This document shows positions 4,761-8,728 of a stretch of 64,000 nt of DNA, piece after piece. Under the pieces are notes generated by a model. That model had not been told where the DNA came from, did not search any database, and saw only the letters and a list, made by a program, of their open reading frames with translations. Made by a program: the position numbers and the translations under genes. The DNA comes from Macrostomum lignano (lineage: Eukaryota), in contig NIVC01000059.1 of the NCBI GenBank assembly GCA_002269645.1, forward strand, positions 248,001 to 312,000, written 5' to 3'. Each line of letters opens with the position of its first letter. The stretch's first letter is position 1.

Positions 4761-7700
4761 ATGACCAAAATGAGTTACGCAACACCGGAAAATGACGTCA
4801 TCGCACCAAACTCAGCAGAGCATGCAAGCACATGGCGTCACTATGCCATGGCCAGCTGGTGCACTGCTGTATTCATCGTGAGCCTGGTATCCAATGGTCT
4901 CTCCGCATACAACATCCTGGCCTCGCCATCGTTGCGCAATCCTTCAATGATGCTGTTGTGCACGAGCTTCTTCAGTAACAGCATCTGCGTTGCGGTGGCG
5001 GCATCCTTGAACCTGGTCTCGGCTTGGGTGGCTGGACACTGGGCCTTCCACATGGGCTTGTGCTACTGGTGAGTCAGTCGCCTCTTAGGTACTTGACAAG
5101 CTCATTTTTTAGTGAATGCAAATGACTTTGTAGTACATGCAACTGTCGTTGCCATGGCGTCCATAGTGATAGCAACTGTGGTTGCCATGGTGTCCATAGT
5201 GATGGCAACTGTGGTTGCCATGGTGTCCATAGTGTTTGCTATGGTGTTCATATTAGTTGCTATGGTGTTCATAGTAGTTGCTACGGTGTTCACAGTGGTT
5301 GCTATGGTGTGCGTAGTAGTTGCTATGGTGTTCATGGTAGTTGCTATGGTGTTCATGGTAGTTGCTATGGTGTTCATGGTAGTTGCTATAGTTTGGTGCT
5401 TATAGTGGTCACTATGGTGAGTCCAGGAGACGCGCTTGCATGCGCTCAGCTCAGGAGTCAGCGGAATTGCCAGAATTGCCCCAGCGCTGGTTGTGGGACA
5501 ATGTTGTGTAAGTTAGTTATTCGTACTTTTATTTGCTCAACAGGTACGTTTTTGGCACGAGCGTCCTGGGCCTGTTCAACATCAATCTGTTGACCGGCCT
5601 GTCGCTCCTCCGGTGCCGCATGGTAACAAAAAACAGACCGTTCAATCACTCAGTCGCCACGGCTCTCATCGCCTTGTGCGCCGCTCTAAGCGCGGCCTGG
5701 AGCCTCCCGCCGATGTTCGGCGTGGCTGGAGTTCGCCGGGTTGGTCACGTGGCCGCCTGCGACTTGGACTGGGAAAGCAGCAGGCCTGAGGACAAGGCGT
5801 ACCTGGTTGGTTTGCTTCTGGGACAGTTTCTGTTGCCGTTGGCAGCCATCACCGCCTCCTATGCCGCCATCTATGCGCATGTAAGTGTGATGAACTGAGA
5901 TTGAAACGAAGCGATTGAATTGGATTGAGCCGCAAGTTGTCAAAAGCGTTTCTAAACTGACGCGTTGGTCCTTTATATTGTATTTTAGAATTGAGTAGTT
6001 AGGACGAACGATGTACATAACGAAGAAGTACTGTACGTATGAATAGAAATCGATCAGCTCAAATGAGGGGGAGGGTGTAAAATGGTAAGCTAAAATGAGC
6101 AGCCAAACGCACAAGGCGGTACATACAGCTACAAATAGTAGCTGGTTCTTCTCTTCCACTGCGGAAGCTTGCTGGAGCTTGCCTGGGGTTGGGGGGAATG
6201 GACACTCAGTTGTGTATATTAGTTAGTTAGTTAGTTAGTTAGTTAGTTAGCTAGTTAGTTAGCTAGTTAGTTAGTTAGTTAGTTAGTTAGTTAGTTAGTT
6301 AGTTAGTTAGTTAGTTAGTTAGTTAGTTAGTTAGTTAGTTAGTTAGTTAGTTAGTTAGTTAGTTAGTTAGTAAGTTACTTACTTACTTACTTACTTACTT
6401 ACTTACTTTACTAACTTAGTTAGTTAGTAAGTTTATTAGTTAGTCAGTTAGTCAGTTAGTCAGTTAGTTAGTCAGTTAGTTAATTAGTTAGTTAGTTAGC
6501 TAGTTAGTTAGTTAGTTAGTTAGTTAGTTAGTTAGTTAGTTAGTTAGTTAGTTAGTTAGTTAGTTAGTTAGTTAGTTAGTTAGTTAGTTAGTTAGTTAGT
6601 TAGTTAGTTAGTTAGTTAGTTAGTTAGCTAGTTAGTTAGTTAGTTAGTTAGTTAGTTAGTTAGTTAGTTAGTTAGCTAGTTAGTTAGTTAGTTAGTTAGT
6701 TAGTTTGCTAGTTAGTTAGTTAGTTAGTTAGCTAGTTAGTTAGTTAGTTAGTCAGTTAGTTAGTTAGTCAGTTAGTTAGTTAGTTAGTTAGTTAGTCAGT
6801 TAGTTAGTTAGTTAGTTAGTTAGTTAGTTAGTTAGTTAGTTAGTTAGTTAGTTAGTTAGTTAGTTAGTTACTTACTTATATACATACTTAGTTAGTTAGT
6901 TAGTTAGTTAGTTAGTTAGTTAGTTAGTTAGTTAGTTAGTTAGTTAGTTAGTTAGTTAGTTAGTTAGTTAGTTAGTTAGTTAGTTAGTTAGTTAGTTAGT
7001 TAGTTAGTTAGTTAGTTAGTTAGTTAGTTAGTTAGTTAGTTAGTTAGTTAGTCAGTTAGTTAGTTAGTTAGTAAGTTAGTTGGTTAGTTAGTTAGTTAGT
7101 TAGTTAGTTAGTTAGTTAGTTAGTTAGTTAGTTAGTTAGTTAGTTAGTTAGTTAGTTAGTTAGTTAGTTAGTTAGTTAGTTAGTTACTTACTTATATACA
7201 TACTTAGTTAGTTAGTTAGTTAGTTAGTTAGTTAGTTAGTTAGTTAGTTAGTTAGTTAGTTAGTTAGTTAGTTAGTTAGTTAGTTAGTTAGTTAGTTAGT
7301 TAGTTAGTTAGTTAGTTAGTTAGTTAGTTAGTTAGTTAGTTAGTTAGTTAGTTAGTTAGTTAGTTAGTTAGTTAGTTAGTTAGTTAGTTAGTTAGTTAGT
7401 TACTTAGTTAGTTAGTTAGTTAGTCAGTTAGTTTGTACATACTTTATAGGGTCTGCACTAGCCGAGGCCGCATGTGCTTTGAGTCACGAACTAATTGGAT
7501 GGTTGAAAACCGGAAAATTAGCCAAATTACTGACTCTAGTTTCTGAAGCGCAGTTTTTTAGATAGGTTTTCTGGAGAAAAATCTTGAGCAGAAGAAGCCT
7601 AATGTGGCGTGCATGATTGTACTTTATTAAGACTGAATTCACATTGTGAACGTCAGATCCGTCGAAGTCGCGCCTCCGGCTTGTTGAGCACCAGCGGGAA

Positions 7701-8728
7701 TGAAGTTAGACGAAATCGCCAGTTCACCATTCACGTATTGGCAATGATTGGTGAGTTGCTGTTGTTTGCTATAGATGGGGCGCCAGCTACAGCGGGGGGC
7801 GCCAGCAACAGAGTTGGCGCCAGCTACAGAGAGGGGCGCCAGCTTCAGAGGTGGCGCCAGCTACAGAGGGGGGCGCCAGCTTCAGAGGTGCCGCCAGCTA
7901 CAGAGGGGCGCCAGCTTCAGAGGTGGCGCCAGCTACAGAGGGGCGCCAGCTTCAGAGGTGGCGCCAGCTACAGAGGGGGGCGCCAGCTTCAGAGGTGGCG
8001 CCAGCTACAGAGGGGCGCCAGCTACAGAGTTGGCGCCAGCTACAGCGGGCGCGCCAGCTACAGAGTTGGCGCCAGCTACAGAGGGGCGCCAGCTACAGCG
8101 GGCGCGCCAGCTACAGAGTTGGCGCCAGCTACAGAGGGGCGCCAGCTACAGAGTTGGCGCCAGCTACAGAGGGGCGCCAGCTACAGAGGGGCGCCAGCTA
8201 CAGAGGGGCGTGAACTACAGATGCAGAACAGGCAATCTCTGCCTATTAGGCAATTCTCGTACAAGCGCAGAAGCCGTCATTCCCTCAGGCGCATTTGTCA
8301 TCTGCTGGACTCCTTACGCAGTTCTGGCTGCTCGCAGCCTGGCCGCTCCGCTGCCAATGGACAGCCTTGTCTATCGCGTGCTGTCAACTGTCGCTCTGCT
8401 GTTGGCGAAGACCGGCATGGCCGCATCGGCCGTCGCCTACTTCGCTGTCAACGCCGAATTTCGGGCCGCTTTCGCGGTTACCCCGCTGGGCAAGCCGATG
8501 CTGCGCTGCGCGAGTTGGCTGATCGGGCGGTTTCGCCGGAACATCGGTAGCAGCGCGGCAGCAGCCAGCAGTGGACTGTCCTCAGCCATTCCCCCACTGG
8601 ACCTGGCCCATCTGCAAAGAGTTGAAGATGTTGAAGCTGGCACCCGCCAGGCTCCAGAACTGCAAATGCTGATTGTCGGAAAGCCGGAGGAGGTGCAACA
8701 GATTGGTGTTGAGCACACAGAGCTTTGA
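4761..8728 (+). CDS. Opsin (class A GPCR, RGR/peropsin/retinochrome-like), 4 exons
   Basis: Exons 4761-5068, 5544-5880, 7657-7750, 8289-8728; all introns GT-AG with matching phases (2,0,1). Seven hydrophobic segments, TM1 SNGL, TM3-top Cys (CYW), LR135C, ECL2 CDLDW, TM6 CWTPYA, TM7 LLAK (K296 equivalent) and helix 8 NAEFR. Confidence 0.85.
5145..5395. repeat. 21-bp minisatellite (GTTGCTATGGTGTTCATGGTA-like) in opsin intron 1
   Basis: Degenerate tandem units; source of the VAMVFMV/MNTIATT ORFs. Confidence 0.85.
6217..7432. repeat. (TTAG)n tetranucleotide microsatellite in opsin intron 2
   Basis: About 1.2 kb of TTAG with short TTAC interruptions. Confidence 0.97.
7777..8212. repeat. ~18-bp GC-rich minisatellite (GGCGCCAGCTACAGAGGG) in opsin intron 3
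   Basis: Tandem units between donor 7751 and acceptor 8288. Confidence 0.92.

Follow-up and report, generated by a model that had tools for sequence, protein, structure and literature searches.

Positions 4761-8728 of the forward strand of a 64,000-nt stretch of Macrostomum lignano contig NIVC01000059.1 (the window, to which all codon coordinates refer) are exactly the ATG-to-TGA extent of one four-exon protein-coding gene, and there is very little doubt that this is a real opsin gene under selection. Counterions of the retinal Schiff base are known at positions 113, 181, 94 and 83 of the bovine rhodopsin numbering used throughout (PMC12221356) and in the form of Cl-/E292 (PMC12401545). No acidic counterion is present at any of these reported sites in the window protein or in its only close database relative, an M. 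lignano gene: both have N83, a non-acidic residue 94, Y113, V181 and L292. The joint absence of all known counterion sites, together with a conserved Asp188, appears to be undescribed. No opsin described as having lost every reported counterion site turned up in the searchable literature, our literature search returned no papers on Macrostomum opsins of this type, and the word 'counterion' is absent from three papers on xenopsins (PMC5648526, PMC6805122, PMC7529461).

Identity, counterion sites and selection

The window protein matches the Pfam 7tm_1 family (E 3.8e-24), and its best sequence matches among solved structures are human cone opsins (E about 1e-15), together with bovine rhodopsin. 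The homology work rests on an exhaustive HMMER scan of 1.84 billion representative proteins, which gave 155 matches at E<=1e-10; a word-indexed protein search had no match for the window protein, hardly any for a 72-sequence profile and only 10 for a xenopsin core. K296, C110 and C187 align to K312, C126 and C203 of the cone opsins, and both K296 and C187 are invariant in alignment A1 (72/72 sequences). An AlphaFold2 model built from a 72-sequence alignment (pLDDT 84, above 90 in the transmembrane core; pTM 0.79) shows a predicted opsin-type beta-hairpin in extracellular loop 2 (ECL2), with DSSP strands at residues 166-169 and 174-177 (bovine 178-181 and 186-189), and when this model was compared with the PDB using Foldseek, the 13 best matches were all opsins, squid rhodopsin first (E 1.2e-12). 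The retinal-contact residues G121, W191, F212, F261, W265, Y268, A269 and A295 are standard in both the window protein and the M. lignano relative. Since K296 and this aromatic pocket are kept, retinal binding is the most likely use of the pocket, and we consider it probable from these residues that the window protein binds retinal.

The coding sequence comprises 1179 nt (392 amino acids), all three introns run from GT to AG, and there is an in-frame stop 8 codons 5' of the ATG. A tblastn search revealed no second opsin copy in the window. The gene is organised as follows (TM, transmembrane helix).

4761-5068, +: exon 1 of the gene model, with a GT donor; start codon, N-terminus, TM1, TM2 and extracellular loop 1 to C110-Y111 plus 2 nt of W112
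4893-4895, 4977-4979 and 5061-5063, +: exon 1 codons of N55, N83 (D2.50 to Asn) and C110; in the same exon in the M. lignano NIVC01000099.1 gene
5069-5543, +: intron 1, in codon 112, phase 2; lineage-specific position; 33-bp and 21-bp minisatellites
5544-5880, +: exon 2, TM3 to TM5; Y113 at 5545-5547, L134-R135-C136 at 5608-5616, Y223 at 5860-5862
5731-5742, 5755-5763 and 5767-5769, +: ECL2 hairpin in exon 2, respectively V178-R179-R180-V181, A186-C187-D188 and D190
5881-7656, +: intron 2, between codons 229 and 230, phase 0; xenopsin-type position; (TTAG)~303 microsatellite at 6219-7433
7657-7750, +: exon 3 (94 nt), intracellular loop (ICL) 3 and the cytoplasmic half of TM6; N247, replacing E6.30, at 7714-7716
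7751-8288, +: intron 3, in codon 259, phase 1; xenopsin-type position; 18/35-bp GC-rich minisatellite at 7768-8221
8289-8728, +: exon 4, TM6 (F261, C264-W265-T-P-Y268), extracellular loop 3, TM7, helix 8, a Ser/Ala-rich tail and stop TGA (8726-8728)
8396-8398, 8408-8410, 8426-8440 and 8450-8464, +: exon 4 codons of L292, K296, S302-A303-V-A-Y306 and N310-A-E-F-R314

Tandem arrays, each of them different, dominate every intron of the gene and the DNA immediately upstream (4409-4704, 5139-5389, 6219-7433, 7768-8221). The upstream array consists of the 12-mer CAGACAGACCCT, repeated 25 times just 5' of the ATG (4409-4704), and the GC-rich minisatellite of intron 3 has units of 18, 35 and 53 bp. 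Several of the arrays in or near the gene generate long spurious open reading frames (ORFs).

Pairwise HMMER alignments to human cone opsins and a MAFFT alignment of 130 of the best 150 HMMER matches, from which the residue counts below are taken, agree on Y113, V181 (in GVAGVRRVGHVAAC), L292 and K296, and both also give C110, L134-R135-C136, C187, D188, D190, CWTPY (W265, Y268), S302-A303-V-A-Y306 and N310-A-E-F313-R314. A first-pass annotation of this DNA had made the same assignments at 113, 181 and 292, had read E(D)RY as LRC and NPxxY as SAVAY with the Cys pair, CWTPY and NxxFR intact, and had called D188 unusual; the two alignments reproduce all of these points, and in neither is position 113 or 181 acidic.

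Position 113: Y in the window protein; Y in 90 of 130 relatives
Positions 134-136 (ERY): L-R-C in the window protein; D/E at 134 in 105 of 130, R at 135 in 121 of 130, Y at 136 in 101 of 130
Position 181: V in the window protein; E/D in 123 of 130
Position 188: D in the window protein; S/T in 105 of 130, D in 2, E in 2
Position 292: L in the window protein; A/S in 89 of 130
Position 296: K in the window protein; K in 126 of 130
Positions 302-306 (NPxxY): S-A-V-A-Y in the window protein; N302 in 120 of 130, P303 in 125 of 130

Because K296, E/D181, N302 and P303 are near-universal among the 130 relatives, the window protein is a true outlier and not an alignment artefact. There is no Asp or Glu in its TM2, in its TM3 or in its TM7 before E312, and a TM2 devoid of acids means that no acid lies near position 94 under any TM2 register, in agreement with the first-pass annotation; position 83 (D2.50), which that annotation left unmentioned, is Asn. 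The polar partners of E181 are also replaced, Y178 by Val and S186 by Ala, such that the Y178/E181/S186 network now reads V/V/A. In the extracellular half of both Macrostomum genes, the only conserved acids are D188, D190, E192 and D198, all in ECL2. Among the aligned sequences, D188 combined with non-acidic residues at 181 and 113 was seen only in the window protein and the M. lignano relative, barring a VA-like fragment from a bird, with E188 and S181, in which the alignment at position 113 is unreliable. By comparison, E181 is the ancestral counterion, E113 serves in vertebrate visual opsins and E94 in box jellyfish (PMC12221356), and a passage of the same paper reports that a xenopsin of L. 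asellus uses E113.

The M. lignano relative (UniProt A0A1I8H915, NCBI PAA90994.1) is annotated as a GPCR-profile (G-protein-coupled receptor) or hypothetical protein, with truncated models; the remaining HMMER matches are about 30% identical to the window protein or less. We rebuilt the full relative, taken as the orthologue, from its NIVC01000099.1 locus (L001; exons at 8363-8661, 9925-10261, 15504-15597 and 21008-21408), which yielded a four-exon gene for 376 amino acids whose intron codons and phases are identical to those of the window gene at all three introns. The two proteins are 60% identical overall and 68% in the seven-transmembrane (7TM) core, and the DNA flanking the two loci does not align. 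Synonymous sites are saturated (dS about 1.6), and the ratio of nonsynonymous to synonymous divergence (dN/dS) is 0.20 overall, 0.13 in the 7TM core (bootstrap 0.08-0.19) and 0.62 in the tails, with a third-position identity of 0.52 versus 0.79 for codon positions 1 and 2. Identical in both genes are N83, Y113, LRC, V178, V181, A186, D188, L292 and SAxAY, within which V304L is the sole exception (SAVAY in the window protein, SALAY in the relative); C110/C187, G121, F261, W265, Y268, A295, K296, Y306 and NxxFR are the same as well. As the dN/dS is low and the unusual states are common to both genes, the window gene is functional and its odd residues are old, maintained features. The first-pass annotation had argued that this is not random decay, and the dN/dS across the pair, which is not near 1 in the core, upholds that view.

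Several further features of the relative were noted. PAA90994.1 (251 aa) begins inside TM3/ICL2, and two UniProt models run through the exon-3 donor into intron 3 (...IIGEL...). The rebuilt protein has N-terminal NxS/T sequons and carries Glu at pocket position 211 instead of the Gln of the window protein, and M. lignano copies vary between Arg and Gly at position 177.

Intron positions and lineage

Introns were mapped in twelve other opsin genes from their genomic loci, and are given here as bovine positions with the phase in brackets.

Window gene and M. lignano relative (this clade): 112 (2), 229/230 (0), 259 (1)
Lingula P0038 (xenopsin group): 229/230 (0), 259 (1)
P0017, 47% identical to Leptochiton xenopsin (xenopsin group): 229/230 (0), 259 (1)
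Saccostrea P0040 (xenopsin group): 229/230 (0), 259 (1)
Mya P0007 (xenopsin group): 109 (1), 172 (1), 229/230 (0), 259 (1)
P0030 (xenopsin group): 229/230 (0), 259 (1), plus three others
Amphioxus P0004 (c-opsin): 47 (1), 121 (1), 184 (0), 232 (0), 312 (0)
Amphioxus P0015 (c-opsin): 121 (1), 180 (0), 232 (0), 312 (0)
Amphioxus P0095 (Go-opsin): 47 (1), 145 (1), 184 (1), 252 (0)
Tubulanus P0006, 'peropsin' (tetraopsin-like): 100 (0), 145 (1), 184 (0), 252 (0)
Asterias P0204 (r-opsin-like): two introns, neither at 229/230 or 259
Nematostella P0170 (ASO-II-like): 53 (1), 91 (2), 168 (1), 228 (2), 292 (1)

The window introns at 229/230 (0) and 259 (1) are both present in all five xenopsin-group genes and in none of the six non-xenopsin genes. 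The residues that flank them also match: with a slash for the intron, the window gene has ...SYAAIYAH/IRR and ...LAMI/GAFVICWTPY where Lingula P0038 has ...FCYLNIYLT/VLS and ...VAML/GNFLLCWTPY. Two conserved introns, the first near yet distinct from a c-opsin intron and the second unique, are the published signature of xenopsins (PMC5648526; PMC7529461), and flatworms have been reported to have xenopsins and to lack c-opsins (PMC5648526). Since the two xenopsin-specific introns are present and flatworms are reported without c-opsins, we regard gene structure as decisive and the placement of the window gene in the xenopsin lineage as very likely. On this placement it would be a strongly diverged opsin of the xenopsin lineage, with Macrostomum as its only source known to date.

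Sequence similarity by itself does not place the protein among the xenopsins. The best full-length matches are mixed (amphioxus c-opsins, r-opsins, a polyclad xenopsin and further groups), xenopsins and c-opsins reach equal BLAST bit scores, profile hidden Markov models of equal size score 151.5 bits for xenopsins, 148.8 for c-opsins and 132.6 for r-opsins, and in neighbour-joining trees (200 bootstraps) the sister group of the Macrostomum pair hops among long-branch singletons. Two signatures of clade A xenopsins are missing: NAE (NSE in the M. lignano relative) stands in place of NxQ, and there is no C-terminal VxPx. Descent from a c-opsin, from a chromopsin of the RGR/retinochrome type or from an ASO-II relative might be entertained on the grounds that amphioxus c-opsins supply the best full-length database matches, that the pair's neighbours in the neighbour-joining tree are c-opsins, pteropsins and long-branch Nematostella sequences, that the c-opsin and xenopsin profiles score equally high, and that RGR and retinochrome also have a derived NPxxY. 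However, the c-opsin introns (121, 180-184, 232/233, 312/313) are all missing from the window gene, as are the Go/tetraopsin-like introns (145, 184, 252) and those of Nematostella, whereas both xenopsin introns are present in a phylum reported to lack c-opsins (PMC5648526), and the bootstrap sister is unstable; we give such a descent very little probability. The first-pass annotation had suggested the RGR/retinochrome type, and as a statement of kinship this is not supported: both xenopsin-specific introns are present, and no intron is in common with the tested Go-opsin and tetraopsin-like loci (0 of the introns at 145, 184 and 252 of P0095 and P0006), a set that excluded true RGR and retinochrome genes. 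The ASO-II hallmark Glu/Asp292 is missing as well, both Macrostomum genes having L292 where Nematostella P0125 has E292.

Three lines of classification were set aside. The neighbour-joining tree was rejected as a basis for classification for its unstable sister group, the lead of c-opsins in a first group-profile scoring was gone with equal-sized subsamples, and affinity to Nematostella ASO-II-like sequences, the most frequent neighbour-joining sister, was ruled out by E292 and by intron positions.

Asp188, signalling motifs and alternative explanations

According to models based on crystal structures, residue 188 adjoins the C11=C12 bond of retinal and Glu181; Cys188 of Opn5L1 forms a covalent adduct with retinal, and the G188D mutant of bovine rhodopsin forms a 509-nm pigment in which the protonated Schiff base is stabilised in meta I (PMC8871353). 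Asp188, on strand beta4 of ECL2, may now stabilise the Schiff-base proton in one photochemical state or more, and the counterion would then have been displaced from 181 to 188 after loss of the ancestral E181 and its polar partners (Y178V, E181V, S186A). With no reported site acidic and with 188 in contact with the chromophore, this displacement is the most specific mechanism that fits the data. D188 is accordingly the leading candidate for a replacement, and we tentatively propose, at somewhat less than an even chance, that it acts as counterion. The first-pass annotation had listed a new counterion at 188 beside a UV pigment and a non-signalling photoisomerase; published mutagenesis (G188D, PMC8871353) lends support to the first of these options. 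An orientation of the D188 side chain away from retinal, as beta-strand alternation might suggest, was considered and dropped in view of the proximity of 188 to C11=C12 and Glu181 and of the Cys188-retinal adduct (PMC8871353).

Several activation microswitches are replaced together: D2.50N, E3.49L, Y3.51C, E6.30N (position 247), N7.49S and P7.50A. R3.50, Y5.58 (Y223), Y7.53, CWxP and the NxxFR of helix 8 are kept. Removal of most of the conserved polar activation network would be expected to make G-protein coupling weak or atypical, and the protein might serve as an accessory pigment, a photoisomerase or a retinal store, rather than as a primary photoreceptor. We draw both suggestions from the lost microswitches by analogy with RGR, retinochrome and xenopsin B, and we hold it to be nearly an even call that G-protein signalling is non-canonical or absent, with little or none of the canonical kind. 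Degenerate G-protein motifs are already a known phenomenon in flatworm xenopsins, which lowers the novelty of the motif degeneration seen here.

A number of points tell against a counterion at 188 and against weak coupling. The hairpin register derived from the predicted strands pairs D188 with the conserved R179, and a structural R179-D188 salt bridge may neutralise the aspartate; human rhodopsin G188E forms no pigment, according to a passage in PMC8871353. As only two sequences are available, constraint on K296 or D188 as individual sites is inseparable from the background of 68% identity in the core. MT2 receptors signal with NAxxY and a bovine NAxxY rhodopsin has 141% activity, and the Gluopsins paper that reports this warns that a derived NPxxY does not prove loss of signalling (PMC9368030). 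Finally, selection has retained R135, Y223, Y306 and NxxFR, an argument for some cytoplasmic partner.

Other explanations would do without a counterion at 188. The main rival is a counterion-less UV pigment whose Schiff base would be unprotonated in the dark, absorbing at ~360-380 nm, with D188 in a structural or tuning role. Such a pigment would suit the absence of acids at 83, 94, 113, 181 and 292, the loss of the S186/Y178 polar network and the hydrophobic surround of the Schiff base (Y113, V178, V181, A186, L292), as well as the possible neutralisation of D188 by R179 in the hairpin register of the model. Counting against it, the natural UV opsins known to us keep E113 or E181 for protonated intermediates or photoproducts. 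Passages in two papers describe counterion mutants of other opsins as turning UV-absorbing (PMC2726285; PMC10729476), but D188 is conserved and adjoins the chromophore, and bovine G188D affects Schiff-base protonation (PMC8871353), and overall we consider the UV pigment unlikely. A quite different proposal, and a very improbable one, is that a Cl- ion acts as counterion and is held by the conserved basic ECL2 residues R179, R180 and H183 in place of Glu292. The basic cluster VRRVxH is kept in both Macrostomum genes, and M. lignano lives in a marine habitat. Corals offer a precedent, and halides act as surrogate counterions in counterion-less mutants; E292, however, raises Cl- affinity about 160-fold in Antho2a (PMC12401545) and is Leu in the window protein, residues 181 and 184 of the cone-opsin Cl- site are both Val, and there are neither common introns nor a stable sequence affinity with the Nematostella ASO-II-like opsin.

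The protein could also be a light-independent class-A receptor or scaffold, for instance chemo-, thermo- or mechanosensory, in which Lys296 and the pocket are inherited and unused for retinal. The simultaneous loss of the counterion network and several microswitches would fit such a role, light-independent roles of opsins have been discussed (PMC9368030), and with two sequences the conservation of K296 is not significant against a core identity of 68%; nevertheless, nearly all opsin retinal contacts, including K296, are kept in both genes, which is unexpected for a re-purposed pocket, and we hold this role to be distinctly unlikely. There is scarcely any chance that the gene is a decaying pseudogene or an annotation artefact. 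The degenerate canonical motifs, the truncated and unnamed NCBI model and the two UniProt models that read into intron 3 might suggest it, but in both genes the ORF is intact over four exons, the splice sites are canonical and the same unusual residues recur, and the core dN/dS of 0.13 at a dS of about 1.6 led us to reject it.

Taken as a whole, a constrained xenopsin-lineage opsin with D188 as counterion and weak or atypical coupling is our best explanation, to which we give a little less than an even chance; the joint proposition that Asp188 is a working counterion and that it arose in a lineage of flatworm xenopsins whose G-protein interface was rewired too is more doubtful. The site of the counterion sets visible-light sensitivity, photochemistry (bistable or bleaching) and activation efficiency, and each new position has been a notable result: E94 of jellyfish in 2018, and D83 of crustacean Opn5b and Cl-/E292 of corals in 2025. 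If true, Asp188 would add one more independent position to the counterions of animal opsins, after 181, 113, 94, 83 and Cl-/292. The window gene, selectively maintained and with a conserved acid at a position that mutagenesis has linked both to chromophore contact and to control of the photocycle, is a test case for a further counterion displacement or for a natural counterion-less pigment, and it adds a macrostomorph member to the poorly understood non-canonical xenopsins of flatworms. M. lignano is a model with RNAi and transgenesis, and whether opsins with degenerate motifs signal or recycle retinal can be tested in it directly. A compact pigment with altered chemistry at 188 could also interest builders of optogenetic tools.

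Other features of the window and known systems compared

Beyond the opsin gene, the window contains the following features.

9325-9957, -: ORF with an insulin-like peptide pattern, about 0.6 kb downstream of the opsin gene; B-chain-like CGRRLYYLWEGAC (C-x11-C), Gln/Arg-rich spacer, A-chain-like CCVSSCSVQQLWNYC (CC-x3-C-x8-C)
19663-20682, -: ORF with an RNA 3'-terminal phosphate cyclase (RTC) domain, Pfam E 5.1e-28
About 25300-61500, -: long ORFs of a UBR4 E3 ubiquitin ligase gene, which takes up over half of the window and whose exons are unusually long; Pfam E3_UBR4_N (E 2.8e-22 and 8.4e-06), E3_UbLigase_R4 (E 3.7e-36)
47591-47817, -: about 230 bp of non-coding DNA in the UBR4 region, 77.5% identical to positions 22214-22456 of the NIVC01000099.1 locus L001

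The first of these is probably a flatworm insulin-like peptide gene; its match to Pfam Insulin (E 0.002, 19.5 bits) lies under the 23-bit cut-off. The counterpart of the 230-bp stretch lies about 0.8 kb downstream of the M. lignano opsin relative, in the opposite relative orientation. The stretch contains no ORF and no tRNA and has no Rfam match; a mobile element or repeat that has been conserved could account for it, as could a conserved non-coding element that was rearranged.

Among known systems, the window gene is like the xenopsins (PMC5648526, PMC6805122, PMC7529461) in both introns, in K296, in its host phylum and in Asn310 (NAEFR here, NAQFR in the Maritigrella xenopsin), although it is only about 25-28% identical to the named xenopsins, has the extra intron in codon 112 and lacks the C-terminal VxPx. 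All 14 xenopsin-group sequences examined have E/D at 181 and eight of them also at 113, in contrast to V181 and Y113 of the window protein. Compared by published descriptions alone, it resembles flatworm xenopsin B, with which it shares a degenerate NPxxY and tripeptide: there, both motifs are strongly modified and absence of signalling is suspected (PMC7529461, PMC6805122), and polyclad clade B xenopsins keep K296 without NxQ and VxPx, for which a role as photoisomerase has been suggested (PMC6805122).

RGR-opsin and retinochrome likewise keep K296 and have a derived NPxxY (NAxxY, VPxxY and YPxxY there, SAxxY here; PMC9368030), and the counterion of retinochrome is E181 (Terakita et al. 2000, as cited in a passage of PMC10729476). 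Both belong to the tetraopsin lineage; they offer an analogy for non-signalling retinal recycling only, not kinship. We know of no report of an RGR without E181. The 'pinopsin-like' c-opsin of Branchiostoma belcheri (XP_019648011.1, P0015) is similar in having Y113, V181, T292 and altered motifs (SRY, NTIIY), and differs in its c-opsin introns (121, 180, 232, 312), in keeping D83 and in having S188. This amphioxus protein is another natural candidate for a non-standard counterion.

The position-188 variants, Opn5L1 Cys188 and bovine G188D and G188C (PMC8871353), are comparable in showing a 188 side chain that touches the chromophore close to C11=C12 and to site 181. Unlike the window protein, those proteins keep E181 and/or E113. 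To our knowledge, a counterion at 188 has yet to be demonstrated in any natural opsin. The coral ASO-II opsins (Antho2a, PMC12401545) are natural and functional without Glu or Asp at 113 and 181, and they provide a precedent for unconventional stabilisation of the Schiff-base proton; there E/D292 is conserved, whereas the window protein has L292, belongs to another phylum and has no introns in common with the Nematostella ASO-II-like gene. Crustacean Opn5b (PMC12221356) differs in being a tetraopsin with canonical signalling motifs and in having Asp83 where the window protein has Asn, but it too is without acids at 94, 113 and 181, and its counterion was found by screening the carboxylates near retinal.

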